From Oculina patagonica (taxonomy: Eukaryota): a stretch of 64,000 bases of DNA. Below, one piece after another: positions 28,896 to 34,564 of the stretch. Both the position numbers and the translations under genes were made by a program. Location of the stretch: assembly GCF_052425735.1 (NCBI RefSeq), contig NC_135758.1, forward strand, positions 37,572,001 through 37,636,000, in the 5' to 3' direction. The stretch's first letter is position 1; each line of letters opens with the position of its first letter. The notes beneath the pieces are model-generated. The model searched no databases and was not told the origin of the DNA. It was given only the letters and a program-made list of their open reading frames with translations.

Positions 28896-31800
28896 TATAA
28901 TACCATACTTTGTGAGGTCTTGTGATAAAAAACACAAAATTTAGTCACAAGACCCGCACAAAACAGTAGATAGAAACAAAAACAAAAACAACAAGGAGTA
29001 ACATTTAGAGCACTCTTTATCACTGTATGCAAATTTATAAGTATTGAAGTACTAGATGTACAAGTGTGTTTTCATATGAACTATGAATTGCTAACAAAAC
29101 GTGGGTAATAGTCGCGTCGGTCTTTCACCCCCATTTATTTCATCAGTTTTATCAATATCGCTTAGAATTCGCGACAGCAGCTTTTTTGGACCAGGGTACA
29201 CAATGTTGATAACATCATTCTGACCACCGCCAGAGCCAATATTCAAGGAGTGAGTTTTGCATTAATGGATTTTTCAAGTGCCCTTGAAAGCTATTCATAG
29301 AAGTATTCTAATGTGACACTGACCGGCCTCAAACTTTTGTAATGCAGATATTTCATAACAGATGGAAATTCCAGGGTCACAAGAGTATGAAATTCAGTCT
29401 TCCAGCTTTCTAAGGCATTTGGTGTTTTTCACAGATCAAACACTCAACGGAAAATGAAACCAAAACGCCACAGCACTTTTCTTGAGCTTGTTTAAAGGGG
29501 CACTGTTACGGGATTTAATTGCATTTAATTTCTCGTCAAAACTGTGCTAAAAGTATGACTACGTGTGTTTGCTCGTACACAAAATGCACCTCATGAAGAT
29601 ATTAAGTTAGTTGTGGAAGGGAGAGCATACTGTTATTAGTCTTTAGGAGTTTCCGAGCCACAAGAGCAGAATTTGAAGAAGTCTGAACGCCTTCTCTAAT
29701 TTGAGATCCAAACTTGTTTGTACCTTACTCGTAATAACACCCTGTTAATTAACAGCTTCAGTAAACTAGTTTGGTAGTATTTAACAAGACTAATATTTTA
29801 TAGTGTTACTGATGTAAAGATGTCTTTTCGTTTTTGACGTTTTTTGAAGTCATGCTGTGATGGCTCTTTTACCAGTTGATCGACATTCGGCCGAGGCTAC
29901 GCGAGAAAGAAAAAAACCTGTGACTGAAAGTTAAACATTTCAAAACACAAACAGATTGCATCTCAAACACAATAAAAATTATCAACAAGAAATAGAGTAG
30001 CACTTCTATTATTTTCAAGGCTGATGCAATTAAATTACAGAACGAATGGCACACTTTTGCCTAGTGAAGTAAGTGCAAATTACTGATGGGCAAACTATAA
30101 TCAAACCCGGCCTTCAAACTTAGGATCAAACTTCAGATTTTTCGTTTGCTTGCTTTCCTTTTAATTTACAAATAATTACCGTATTTACCTATGAAGGCAA
30201 ATAATAACGCCTAGGGAAATTCAGAAAATAAGACATATATTAAATCAGTTATAGGTCTAAGAGGTATAATATGAGACATGTGAAACAGATGAATTTTGCT
30301 GAACTGTGTAACTGCTCAACTGAACATTGTTTTGATTTGTTACGAAGGGAGCAACCATAACAACAACAACAACGTCTCCAACCAAAAGATCTATTGAGCA
30401 GAAAAATGGCTTGAACACAGTAGAAGTGATGCAAAAAGGCTGGTAATGGAAGTTAAAACATCCAAATACACAAACAGATCGCATCTCTAACACAAGTTAT
30501 AGAAATCAGTGGCGAAAGGCCTGTGGAAGCACTTCGGCTTTTATTTTCAGAGCGGATGCGAATTCCACAAGAATGAGGACCTTTTTCCCAGTGCCCGCAG
30601 GTCTAAATTACTTATGTATTTATTAAAATTATCAACGCAGCTCTAACACAATAGTTACGATCAACAGGAAAAGGCCTGTAGAAACATCTCTATTATTTTT
30701 CAGAGCGGACGCAAATTCCAGAATGAATGATGCAATTTTTCCTAGTGCCTGCAGGTCTGCACTATGAATGAAATAATTGCCAATTTAATACTGTGTGATG
30801 GCAAAATGATTAAACAAAGAAAAACACAACTAAAATAAATGAGTTCGAACTGAATGGGCAGTTAACAGAACTCTGAAATGAAAACTAACATATAACAAAC
30901 GGTATCAAAACACTTAAGCAGTTTTCTTTTAATGAAGTGTTGACGTTCTAGAAGAACAAGTGCAACAAGTTCCTACTGGAACTAGACCACAGCAGCAAGG
31001 AATTTTGGACTGTTCAACCTAGGATCTCCTGATTCAGTAGCCATGTGCTTAAACTCTAGAATCTGGAGCATTTTATTCTGGGGTTGATTTGGCTTAAATT
31101 CAGTTTCTTGCTTTTTTTAGATCCAAAAGACTCCAACAGAAAACTGCCCAGTCACAGAGGAATTCACTTCCCCTAAAAAACCGCAAGACCAAATTATGAA
31201 TGGAATGAGTTCCAATTACTAATAGACAAGTGATCAAACAAGGAAAAAAAACAACTTTCCAAAAGACTTCAAACTGAAAACATTTTAATTTGCGCAATTC
31301 AAAGCTAAAAGCAAATTAATCAAACTGCCACACCTGTAATCAACGTAATGACATTTTATTCCTTGTAGTGAACATTTAAGACCCAACTGCAGACCTGGGA
31401 CTACAGTTAGCACTTTGTCACTCTTGAAGAGAGGCGGAGGTATGTTCAATCTCATTTTTATATTAGTTTTGCTCATTTACTAAAAGTCATGTTGTTCATA
31501 ATAACATTATCAATTTTCGTAAATTTATATTCTCAAACCAAAGACAGTTTGTAACATTGTTTAATTTCTTTCAGAAAGCACCCGAGAAAGTCCTTACTTT
31601 GGATTCAACTAGTGATCTTGTAAGTAAACTTCATTTATTCATATATCGTCAATCACAAAAATAATTTGAAGAAATTGCAAGCATTAAAGACCCGAGTGGC
31701 TTTCAAAAATTTATTTTTATTTCCAGTGAACTAATGAGTTGTTTGTACAATTATCAAATTAACTTGTATCTGGAAAAGGAATAGTTCGGTGTTGAAACTG

Positions 31801-32303
31801 TGTCTTTTAGATATTTAACTTGGTATCTAACATGTGTAGTGTCCCAAAAATTATCTTGAACTTAACAACTTCTAATAAACTTAAACTCCCAACGCAGTCA
31901 TTATGAAGTTGGAAGAATTTGCTTCTCCTTCCAAAACACTTTTACGAACTTTTGCCTTCAGATCTGAGTTATGAACGAAAATCGAATACCGGCTACTACT
32001 AAGAGGAATATGACTAAAGAAGGAAAACAAAGCTTCTAAACAGATAAAAGACTTCAAACTGAACACAGTTATTTTGCATGACTAACAACTGAAAACAAAG
32101 TATGGTATCAAAACAAAACTTGTTTTTTAGTAATTAAGTCCGGACACTCTAGAAGAACAGGTATTTAGTACAGCCAATGAATGCACTCGCACGATAAAAC
32201 CTGTTAGTAGCAAGGAATTTGTACATTCGTCTTACTTTATCAGTCTGCATGCACATGCTCACATGAAGCTGCAACTTGTAAGTTAAGAGTTTTAACTTGA
32301 CAG

Positions 32304-32526
32304 TTTTGTTTGGCCTTAGTTAGTAATAAAACATGAATTTGAACACGAATTGCTAAAACAGAAGTTCAATTCAGAACAAAACGAAATGTGGGACATACAA
32401 TGCATAGTAAAGTAAGGTTTTGTTTGGCCTTAGCTAGTAATAAGAACATGAATTTGAACACAATTTGCTTAAACAGAAGTTCAATTCAGAACAAAACGAA
32501 ATGTGGGACATACAATGCATAGTAAA
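32304..32526. repeat. Tandem duplication of a ~110-bp unit
   Basis: TTTTGTTTGGCCTTAG...GGGACATACAATGCATAGTAAA occurs at 32304-32411 and 32418-32526. Confidence 0.9.
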
Positions 32527-32869
32527 TAATAAACCGAAGAATTTTCTTCTGGTTCTCTTTCGTTTAATTCATTCAGAAAAATCTTGAGTTTTATTATTAC
32601 TGCCACAATTAAGGATGTATGGTGCATTTTATTCAAGAAACCACACAGCCCAGCATTATAGACCATTATAATACAAGTTCAATCACAAATTGTTTCAATT
32701 AATTACTAGTAGGAAACTCTATCTGACTTAAACAAAAACTGTACCAGCATTTAGGTGCATAGTATGAAACTTTTAAGCTCACCCAATTTAATCCTGTCTG
32801 TTATAATTAATAACTTCTAATTTGTTGGGTATGGCTTTGTAGGTTTTCTTGGAGAAAATAAGGTAAAAC

Positions 32870-33364
32870 ATGGGAGGAGTTCAGATTAAAAACTGTACTG
32901 CCGTGCCACTCAAGATCCAGCTATGCCAAGTCAGCGTTTTGTACCACGATCTCGTCCAACCCGGAGAGTATTTTACCAGGGAGACCGGCGCTGCGCATTT
33001 CACAATCAAGATCACAGTCAGCGATAAAGACGACACATCATGGACCGACACAGTTTTACCTATTTTTTCAGTTGTCGTGTCAACCCTTGTAGGCATGGCT
33101 ACTGGTGGTGCAGGTTTTGCGGGTCTGGTTTCTGGAACTGCGGCTGGAGGTAGATCTGTGCTGACAAGGGAACTTGCAAACAAGCTGTTCCTTGAAGCCG
33201 ACAACAGCCACTGTTACCTCAGCTCGGCAGGATGGTATTTCGGCGGTAAAAATGAATTAGAAATACGTGGAGGTCCTCGAATTCTGGCAGATTCCAGAGG
33301 TTACAGTTACAACGGTTCTCGACTTCGTATTGTTGACAGGAATAATAGCAGTAGACATTCTTAA
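32870..33364 (+). CDS. Uncharacterised 164-aa protein with a central hydrophobic Gly/Ala-rich segment, single coding exon
   Basis: Intact ORF with context AAACATGG. Acceptor TTGTAG at 32842. Candidate UTR exons end at 31439 (GAG/GTATGT) and span 31575-31619 (CAG.../GTAAGT). AATAAA at 33485. Confidence 0.82.
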   Translation: MGGVQIKNCTAVPLKIQLCQVSVLYHDLVQPGEYFTRETGAAHFTIKITVSDKDDTSWTDTVLPIFSVVVSTLVGMATGGAGFAGLVSGTAAGGRSVLTRELANKLFLEADNSHCYLSSAGWYFGGKNELEIRGGPRILADSRGYSYNGSRLRIVDRNNSSRHS

Positions 33365-34564
33365 CTTCAAATACGTGTGTAACGTCTGTGTGTGCGTGTT
33401 CGTGTTGCTTTTTTGCAGATGTAATGACGCGTGTTTACTATTCATAGGTATTATGAAGAATTATTACACTCCAAATTGTGTTTGAATAAAAAGGTTGTGT
33501 TATGTGTATGTGTGTTTTGTGCTAGCTTCATCTTCAAAAGATGGTGCGATGAAAGGGTTACTATACTTTCCCATCTAACCCATCTTTGCCCAGTGCATGC
33601 AACTGTTTTCAAGGAATCGAATTTCTTGCATTATTTACAGCACTTTAACCTTTCGCATTGGTGTTGACTCAGTCTACTGGCCTCTAACAGAGTACGTACA
33701 GATTTTTGTATTGTTCCAGATGTTTAATTTTGGTCAGACATTTGTGGGATGTTATGGAAAATTTAAGTAGATGTTTTTGTTATGACAGTTTCAGTAACTT
33801 GTTCTAACACTATCTTGGGGTTTCACTGCCAGCCACTGATTTCAGATAGATATATCTCGTTAAGCATGTACCTCTCTACTTAATAAACGTTAACAATTTC
33901 ATCTGATGCCCTTGTAATAGTCACTCGTGAAAGACTAAAAAAATAAAACGGATTGAGAGTGTTTGTTGTAGTGTTTGTTGTTGTTATTGGGTTACTGGCT
34001 TACCTCCTATCTAAAGCAGCCTTTCGTCAAATTATTGGCGGATGAACACGGGTTCCTAAAACAGTCTTGTCCAATTTTTCTTGTGTATAATTCACATAAA
34101 AATCCTTACCGAGCACAACAGCGTAAGAGTTCAAAAATGACAGAATAGGTAGTTCTCTTGCCATTGTTTGAAGTTGACCCCAGTACCCCAGTATACCTAT
34201 GCAGCCCATGTGAAAACAAGGCATCTGAATAGTTCTGTGGTACACCCCCCCCCCCCACCCCCTTACTTTTATCTGTACCTCCATGGAAGGTGGAGATGAG
34301 AAAGTTCCGTATTACCAATTTATTCAGTGGTTATTTGTTCTCAGTCGTTCATAACGCTTGTAGCACAGCCCAGTACATCTGACTGTGGATTTAGTGTTTG
34401 GTCGGATTCTGTTTGTAGATAACTTATCTCAAAAGATAAGAACTCATGGTTTTTTTCGCAATTCTTATTTATCGATATGTTTTTCCTACAATATATATTT
34501 ATATTTTTTCCTCGGCGGATGAAAATTTCAAATGCGAACATGATCAAGCAACTGACATAGGAAG

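Follow-up and report, generated by a model that had tools for sequence, protein, structure and literature searches.

The window analysed here is a 64,000-nucleotide (nt) stretch of the Oculina patagonica genome (contig NC_135758.1, positions 37,572,001–37,636,000), and the gene in question is a complete single-exon coding sequence (CDS) at 32870–33364 on its forward strand, encoding a standalone module protein of 164 amino acids (aa) followed by a stop codon. It lies near 37.6 Mb on chromosome CM126635.1 of assembly GCA_052425735.1. An original prediction, made from the letters alone, had singled out this intronless open reading frame (ORF) by its motifs as a candidate pore-forming effector, and both the ORF and the motifs were recovered; the gene call draws on the ORF itself, an orthologue, the ratio of non-synonymous to synonymous divergence (dN/dS) and a hidden Markov model (HMM) of the family. 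The CDS is uninterrupted in the window gene and in its relatives alike. The N-terminus has no hydrophobic leader, and an in-frame TAA two codons 5′ of the ATG, within the same exon, rules out a longer N-terminus, in agreement with the predicted lack of a signal peptide.

The nearest relative, found in another assembly (protein P0001, locus L006), shares 88% identity across all 164 residues (E = 9e-93), and the CDS regions are 87% identical in nucleotides. A Nei–Gojobori count of 16 synonymous and 23 non-synonymous differences gave a dS of 0.149, a dN of 0.064 and a dN/dS of 0.43. The 3′ flank is also conserved with L006 (87% to position 33537 and 81% on to 34422), and the guanine-plus-cytosine (GC) content of the CDS is 0.477, as compared to 0.36–0.39 in the flanks. 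The window protein matched the family HMM with an E-value of 5.6e-54, and an HMM scan of the six-frame translation of the window returned only 32870–33364, with no second copy or pseudogene of the module. The genes around the ORF are ordinary eukaryotic ones (RabGAP-TBC, RRM proteins, peptidase-M16 and TPR exons), so the contig is not a contaminant. Overall, 32870–33364 (+) is a genuine gene, kept under selection, in a genome of stony-coral type.

Module anatomy and predicted structure

The protein is predicted to fold into a β-sandwich split by an insert. The N-terminal half (residues 3–50, 32876–33019, +) comprises five strands modelled by AlphaFold with a predicted local distance difference test (pLDDT) score of 93–95 over conserved columns, and contains all family motifs of this half: I-x-N-x-T, Q-V-G-x-L-Y and P-G..F.R.T-G-A-V-H/W-F-T. 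It is followed by an uncharged, Gly/Ala-rich hydrophobic insert (residues 61–94, 33050–33151, +), a short variant of the family's insert delimited by hydropathy, alignment gaps and a pLDDT below 50. A polar helical linker (residues 96–115, 33155–33214, +), with helices at 100–107 and 112–115 in the models and a hydrophobic moment no higher than that of shuffled sequences, leads from the insert to the C-terminal half (residues 116–156, 33215–33337, +). This half again has five strands in conserved columns (pLDDT 86–93), bears the motifs S-x-G-W-Y-x-G and I-x-G-G-P, and is predicted to form one sandwich with the N-terminal half.

The AlphaFold2 model, built on a 76-sequence alignment, reached a mean pLDDT of 78.6 and a predicted template modelling score of 0.74. 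Residues 1–50 and 110–160 scored 86–95 and formed a single sandwich of 5 + 5 strands, with residues 58–95 remaining below 50 and showing a helical tendency at 66–77; an earlier model from a shallower alignment was also low there. The predicted β domain interrupted by a Gly/Ala-rich segment thus took shape as a ten-strand split sandwich, and the interruption is a conserved property of the family: the three-part build is kept from corals to bacteria. Near-invariant columns hold glycine, proline and aromatic residues, with no conserved Asp/Glu/His/Cys/Ser catalytic set, which favours a binding or membrane role over an enzymatic one.

The fold check that had been proposed (an AlphaFold monomer followed by Foldseek) returned a confident split β-sandwich with no significant match: two PDB runs and one BFVD run gave nothing at E ≤ 0.001. 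The best match was PucM (PDB 2h0e), a transthyretin-like sandwich, at E = 2.7e-3, with TM-scores of 0.39 (query) and 0.54 (target), a root-mean-square deviation (rmsd) of 7.9 Å and 7% identity. PucM, a transthyretin-like/5-hydroxyisourate hydrolase protein, shares the general β-sandwich topology, but it has no hydrophobic insert and the sequence profiles do not match. Matches to cholesterol-dependent cytolysins (CDCs) involved a domain-4-type sandwich and were sub-significant (E ≥ 0.02, TM-score ≤ 0.28, rmsd about 9 Å), which does not place the protein in the MACPF/CDC group. As modelled, the fold cannot be recognised as belonging to a known pore former.

The insert of the window protein is a 34-aa uncharged run, close to the ~35 aa foreseen, with a maximum Kyte–Doolittle 19-residue mean of 1.78 at residues 62–80 (the threshold for a transmembrane-grade window being 1.6). 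The run contains 10 small-xxx-small motifs by raw count, with a family median of 8, and so shows the (G/A/S)-x-x-x-(G/A/S) repeats in an uncharged segment that define a glycine zipper; the Pfam glycine-zipper models themselves matched none of the 76 members at E ≤ 1. Across these 76 members the insert has a median length of 82 aa (range 24–117), its longest uncharged run a median of 36 aa (up to 96), its G + A fraction is 0.36 and its mean hydropathy is near 1.5. Long-insert members have 15–23 transmembrane-grade windows spanning 40–90 residues. Since both halves build one sandwich, a membrane-embedded insert must exit and re-enter on the same side, as a loop or hairpin and not as a single pass. 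With 34 aa, the window insert has room for a re-entrant loop and is too short for two full helical spans. Of the glycine-zipper-like hairpin suggested originally, the small-xxx-small spacing within a conserved insert therefore stands, and a two-span hairpin does not.

The N-terminus offers a second possible membrane contact. Signal-peptide and myristoylation calls were made with simple pattern rules. Among the 53 representatives with an N-terminal module, 30 begin with Met-Gly (MG) and 25 fit the PROSITE myristoylation pattern PS00008; Gly at position 2 is expected in roughly 7% of proteins by our own estimate, so MG starts are far above expectation. Eukaryotic members often begin with a myristoylation-like MGxxxS, and this start points to membrane association at the cytosolic face in the eukaryotic relatives. 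In the coral clade, Gly2 is near-invariant and position 6 is Ile.

Family distribution and bacterial loci

In corals, a word-indexed search recovered at least 47 clusters at E ≤ 0.01, mostly 45–88% identical over the full length; those that carry a species name are entries of Orbicella faveolata and Montipora foliosa labelled "uncharacterized protein". Several paralogues occur per Mb-scale contig, spaced more than 10 kb apart, and tight tandem clustering was rejected, as none was seen within ±10 kb. An alignment of 23 coral sequences has 27 invariant columns. Most coral paralogues are about 190–196 aa long; in the window protein and its orthologue, some 30 residues of the Gly/Ala-rich middle are missing, and shortening of other kinds is seen in a few further paralogues. 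By this comparison, the window copy appears to be a derived short-insert paralogue.

An exhaustive phmmer search of 1.84 billion representatives returned 156 clusters at E ≤ 1e-3, of which 28 reached E ≤ 1e-10; by the family HMM, the long proteins among them hold the entire three-part module, extending beyond the N-terminal half. Of the representatives that look complete, 48 are standalone copies of the module, 15 have it at the N-terminus, 33 at the C-terminus and 23 in the interior. Signal-peptide-like N-termini accompany 39 of the 56 C-terminal or internal modules, as compared to 2 of the 63 standalone or N-terminal ones. The eukaryotic members are leaderless and standalone: they come from corals, the sea cucumber Holothuria leucospilota, the tardigrade Hypsibius exemplaris, glomeromycetes (Entrophospora, Ambispora and Rhizophagus) and a diplonemid transcriptome (EukProt "Hpha"). 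The module also occurs in a hornwort transcriptome, and further members lie on Mb-scale or animal-like contigs. The expectation of patchy relatives in fungi and microbial eukaryotes was thus supported: besides many bacteria, the relatives include fungi, a protist, a tardigrade and a sea cucumber. In two eukaryotic contigs, reverse-transcriptase/integrase (retroelement) ORFs flank the members (L004 3025–6720; L051 1–1348, 6644–7441 and 18202–18777).

No named family was matched in Pfam (E ≤ 10 for the window protein), NCBIfam, PADLOC or the PDB by sequence and profile, and the 76 relatives gave nothing meaningful against Pfam at E ≤ 1. Two weak leads were rejected: "Dynamin-like_hel_bact" in five members (E = 0.0017) looks like a match to Ala/Gly-rich composition, and PF28514 on the Holothuria protein is present in no other member and probably covers that protein's other half. 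A viral origin was also rejected, as two IMG/VR scans gave no relatives. No published description of the family was found in the libraries and papers searched. The suspicion of an undescribed family was therefore justified, and we regard the module as an apparently undescribed protein domain family that follows a familiar design logic.

A scan of GTDB with one genome per species yielded 39 module loci, and the bacterial members span at least seven phyla. The taxa include Cyanobacteria, Acidobacteriota, Gemmatimonadota, Alpha-, Beta- and Gammaproteobacteria, Eremiobacterota and Flavobacterium, and the cultured isolates with the module are Tahibacter aquaticus, Roseateles oligotrophus, Algimonas arctica, Paraglaciecola algarum and Microcoleus. 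The domains found alongside the module chiefly bind carbohydrates: Tectonin, DM9, LamG_3, B_lectin, ricin-B, fascin/FRG1 β-trefoil, F5/8-C and PAN. Bacterial members mostly have a signal peptide and lectin-type domains, with the module commonly at one end of a multidomain protein. Because every bacterial ORF was taken at its greatest length, the GTDB set under-calls signal peptides.

In 7 of the 39 loci, a secretin gene starts 3–99 bp downstream of the module gene(s), and in an eighth (L002/L022) the secretin lies two genes upstream (L002 2643–4514). The secretin loci (L026 6759–9620, L027 6654–8282, L028, L041, L044, L045 and L046) belong to several phyla. The remaining genes around the pair are unrelated housekeeping or regulatory genes; no other secretion-system genes were found there, so the secretin is an orphan. 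Module and orphan secretin may form an undescribed two-gene "cargo plus secretin" export cassette.

The five standalone bacterial copies (four from cyanobacteria and one from Flavobacterium) have a different neighbour: in 5/5, a conserved gene for an acidic protein of 113–141 aa lies directly upstream (L008 5573–5998, L017 2391–2762, L018 5549–5920, L019 1987–2334 and L020 5647–5988). It belongs to no known family and is confined to the standalone bacterial copies. Such an arrangement is as expected for a chaperone or immunity partner, and we consider its product a candidate for either role. In 15 of the 39 bacterial loci (L021, L023, L024, L027, L029–L035, L037, L038, L042 and L043), a domain of ~135–170 aa stands after the signal peptide and before the module. 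It has no Pfam match, and the idea that it is an insert-less copy of the module was rejected (E > 0.03); it constitutes a separate unnamed family. The Hellea/Robiginitomaculum/Algimonas loci share a conserved gene directly 3′ of the module gene (L030 7969–8559, L031 7458–7841 and L034 7951–8556), which in the two that were scanned, L030 and L034, encodes a pentapeptide-repeat protein.

No PADLOC defence model was matched. With regard to Rhs-type polymorphic toxins, the module is often C-terminal, and the sole RHS_repeat match (P0170) scored 20.5 bits against a cut-off of 22. Taken together, the signal peptides, lectin domains and orphan secretin fit an exported module that would act on membranes.

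Proposed function and its alternatives

Our best reading, which we hold tentatively and at somewhat less than even confidence, is a membrane-perturbing effector module of the defence or cell-death type. The module probably acts on membranes; a pore-forming or toxin role is purely inferred. The β-sandwich would serve as a soluble scaffold that positions the insert, and the insert, moderately hydrophobic and rich in small-xxx-small (glycine-zipper-like) motifs, would enter the bilayer as a re-entrant or hairpin segment. Inserts that have entered the membrane could then self-associate. In bacteria, exported proteins directed at glycans would have the module as the end that perturbs or translocates across membranes. 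The standalone proteins of corals and other eukaryotes, leaderless and often N-myristoylatable, could reach the membrane from the cytosolic side or after cell breakage, and would act as membrane-perturbing effectors of defence or cell death.

A bolder version can be formulated, although we consider it rather unlikely. The module would represent a new cross-kingdom class of membrane-inserting, possibly pore-forming or translocating domain, delivered in Gram-negative bacteria as the active part of glycan-targeted exoproteins by a dedicated two-gene "cargo plus orphan secretin" cassette, and deployed inside eukaryotic cells as a leaderless, often N-myristoylated, membrane-permeabilising executioner that expanded in corals for defence or cell death.

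Several known systems resemble the module in part. Lectin-fused membrane attackers, or chimerolectins, include natterin/aerolysin-type β-pore formers with DM9 or jacalin lectins (PMC8402412, PMC7284397) and leaderless fungal defence proteins such as CCTX2 (PMC13324453). Like the module, they join a carbohydrate-binding part (DM9, Tectonin, ricin-B, LamG) to a separate non-enzymatic part, are patchily distributed in bacteria, fungi and invertebrates, have some leaderless eukaryotic members and show a cnidarian expansion. However, they insert an amphipathic, alternating β-hairpin, whereas the insert here is Gly/Ala-rich and uncharged, and the coral proteins have no lectin domain at all. The module has no sequence or fold relation to the aerolysin/ETX-MTX2 group: Pfam gave no match at E ≤ 10 for the window protein or at E ≤ 1 for the 76 relatives, and no such structure was among the top 50 Foldseek hits of either PDB run.

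Glycine-zipper toxins, which include VacA, Tse4 and Ssp6, offer a parallel for the insert. In Tde1, a type VI secretion system (T6SS) effector, an N-terminal glycine zipper is needed for membrane translocation (PMC10240207). Both there and in the module, small-xxx-small spacing recurs in an uncharged, moderately hydrophobic segment of exported bacterial proteins, and the standalone bacterial copies have a small partner gene next to them. Nevertheless, the segment is terminal in these effectors and sits in the middle of a β-sandwich here, and the bacterial module loci contain no T6SS genes, having an orphan secretin instead.

Actinoporins are made with leader and propeptide sequences. They are cnidarian β-sandwich cytolysins (PMC9645577) and, like the window protein, measure about 20 kDa, are poor in cysteine, display conserved exposed aromatic motifs (e.g., G-W-Y) and have a separate segment that could enter the bilayer. 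In actinoporins, however, this segment is an N-terminal amphipathic helix and not an internal hydrophobic insert, and no actinoporin match was obtained by sequence, including the Pfam sea-anemone cytotoxin model, or by fold.

A number of observations weigh against a membrane-perturbing effector. No known pore-former family or fold was matched by Pfam, by the Foldseek top 50 of each PDB run or among the 76 relatives. The window insert is short, and no more than four of its 19-residue windows exceed the transmembrane threshold. Across the family the insert is of low complexity and hypervariable in length, and it is absent from some members, the coral paralogues P0043 and P0044 among them, where a short polar loop takes its place; since such insert-less members exist, the sandwich has its own role, and the insert might be no more than a linker or anchor. 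The coral N-terminus, with Ile at position 6, fails PS00008, which demands a small residue there. Leaderless eukaryotic members and the 25 of 53 fits to PS00008 would suit a resident membrane protein equally well. Finally, the support for expression comes from contigs of a Montipora relative and not from the window gene itself.

The strongest alternative, which we consider less probable than not but substantial, is a resident hairpin-anchored membrane protein without lytic or pore activity, in which the insert, together with N-myristoylation in many eukaryotes, tethers the sandwich. The sandwich would then be a binding or scaffolding unit on the cytosolic face, or on the periplasmic face of the bacterial inner membrane. 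Caveolin- and reticulon-type proteins are monotopic, hairpin-anchored and acylated membrane proteins. They resemble the coral protein in being leaderless, with a hydrophobic segment too short for two spans and flanks on one side, and resemble many relatives in having an N-terminal acylation signal. There is no homology, however, and the module differs in its Gly/Ala-rich, low-complexity insert of variable length and in its exported, lectin-fused bacterial members. The lack of signal peptides in eukaryotic members, the MG starts and PS00008 fits, the near-invariant Gly2 in corals and the need for both sandwich halves to share one membrane side, a feature of monotopic hairpin anchors, all suit such a protein, and the 40–96-aa uncharged segment could act as a stop-transfer hairpin in Sec-exported bacterial members. 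An inner-membrane-anchored β-sandwich beside a secretin would also recall the inner-membrane partners of secretins. Conversely, the lectin-type partners and polymorphic architectures suggest extracellular targets, and a dedicated anchor would not usually range in length from 24 to 117 aa or be lacking in some members, as the insert is. The failure of the coral N-terminus to fit the myristoylation pattern counts against this explanation too, and the small upstream partner gene in bacteria better fits a toxin-handling pair.

It is also conceivable, though unlikely, that the module does not engage the membrane interior, and that the sandwich binds glycan, protein or a lipid head group, with the Gly/Ala stretch as a flexible linker at a permissive loop. 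Insert-less members, the low pLDDT of the insert, the concentration of conservation in the sandwich and the best fold resemblance, which is to a soluble transthyretin-like sandwich, are all compatible with this. Ordinary flexible linkers, however, are polar, whereas the insert is free of charge over runs of up to 96 aa, with 19-residue Kyte–Doolittle means of up to about 2.1, in corals, fungi and bacteria, and its composition is kept across kingdoms though its sequence varies.

If the module does act on membranes as we propose, a β-sandwich with an internal glycine-zipper-like insert would be a new structural solution among the few domains that attack or anchor in membranes, and one shared by bacteria, fungi, protists and animals. 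Several hundred "hypothetical proteins" would thereby gain a name and hypotheses open to testing, among them an expanded coral family with a possible bearing on coral immunity or cell death, and the finding would draw attention to an undescribed bacterial two-gene export cassette of cargo and orphan secretin. Even as a resident hairpin anchor, the module would be a clear example of a domain conserved across kingdoms that the domain databases searched do not include.

Descent of the coral gene, transcript structure and neighbouring features

To place the coral proteins, a neighbour-joining distance tree was built from 143 sequences over 89 core columns with 200 bootstraps. The coral proteins were monophyletic in 174 of the 200 replicates (87%). 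Both Orbicella and Montipora fall in this clade, which dates the gene to before the two main stony-coral lineages split. The smallest clade uniting the corals with the tardigrade, glomeromycete, sea cucumber and diplonemid sequences numbers 39 sequences, none of them a labelled bacterium; a bacterium-free clade of corals and named eukaryotes was recovered in 86 of 200 replicates, and the exact 39-member split in 16 of 200. In this tree, no nesting of the coral clade within a supported donor clade was found. We read the family as old in stony corals and not as a recent bacterial import, while its deeper history may be either ancient with losses or a result of several transfers.

The original prediction had instead favoured a horizontally acquired gene domesticated by gaining introns in its untranslated regions (UTRs), and this part was not supported. 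A recently acquired bacterial or fungal toxin gene of this kind would account for the patchy cross-kingdom distribution, the intronless CDS and the fact that none of the homologues found belonged to typical animal families. We nevertheless judge it very unlikely: the monophyletic coral clade does not fall inside a bacterial one and groups, if weakly, with eukaryotes in the point-estimate tree, the gene sits on a 49-Mb chromosome among ordinary intron-bearing neighbours, and its GC content is typical of coding sequence. Weaker still, a chance ORF or decaying pseudogene without a product, for which the shorter insert relative to most paralogues and the restriction of transcript-like evidence to a relative might seem to speak, is extremely improbable for an ORF that is intact in two species under the constraint given above, with every family motif preserved and a strong family HMM match.

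As for the transcript, the proposed model (all +) starts with candidate 5′-UTR intron 1 (31440–31574; GTATGT donor and TTTCAG acceptor, called from these signals), followed by candidate 5′-UTR exon 2 (31575–31619, called from its flanking AG and GT signals) and candidate 5′-UTR intron 2 (31620–32842), which is called from splice signals, with a putative donor and an alternative donor at 32278. The 5′-UTR part of the coding exon (32843–32869), which contains the in-frame TAA and is preceded by an AG acceptor at 32841–32842, is called from the splice signal and Montipora contigs. The 3′ UTR (33365–33490) runs through the foreseen polyadenylation signal, AATAAA at 33485–33490, and is called from this signal and from the 3′ flank conserved with L006.

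Two Montipora contigs assembled from sequencing runs by Logan, L047 and L048, have a common CDS, and their upstream sequences diverge ~37 nt before the ATG. This switch point is homologous to the window junction 32842/32843 and thereby supports the acceptor, which lies 27 nt before the window ATG and is the only proposed splice site with comparative support. From these differences between contigs we read the switch as probable alternative splicing of 5′-UTR exons, which would show expression in a relative. Directly 5′ of the common 5′-UTR/CDS exon, a segment of ~80 nt (L047 609–688) differs from L048, as would fit either a cassette exon or a choice of first exons in a coral paralogue's 5′ UTR. 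Neither of the two proposed upstream UTR exons is conserved at the orthologous locus L006. Of the two UTR introns originally drawn, the good GT/AG signals and the last acceptor were thus upheld, the coordinates were shifted by one base and the upstream exons were not found conserved. Candidate intron 2 also contains a 115-bp tandem repeat in two copies (95% match, 32303–32526), just 5′ of which lies the alternative donor, a good GTAAGT at 32278, and the stretch 32236–32305 is 80% identical to a sequence ~190 nt 5′ of the CDS in the TARA coral-metagenome scaffold L007.

Elsewhere in the window, a DUF5588/TPR-like exon (2372–2761, +) lies close to the start. The region at 13336–14075 and 14452–14958 comprises a GC-rich patch (0.49 vs. 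~0.38 elsewhere) with long ORFs overlapping on both strands, which have no Pfam match, and, after it, an exon encoding Peptidase_M16_C. A RabGAP-TBC gene (~42374–43364, −) is located about 9 kb downstream of the module gene. Finally, two long single-ORF genes at 51812–52741 (+) and 62903–63802 (+) encode hnRNP-like proteins with two RRM domains each; they share 76% identity over 195 aa and, lying ~11 kb apart, represent a local duplicate pair.

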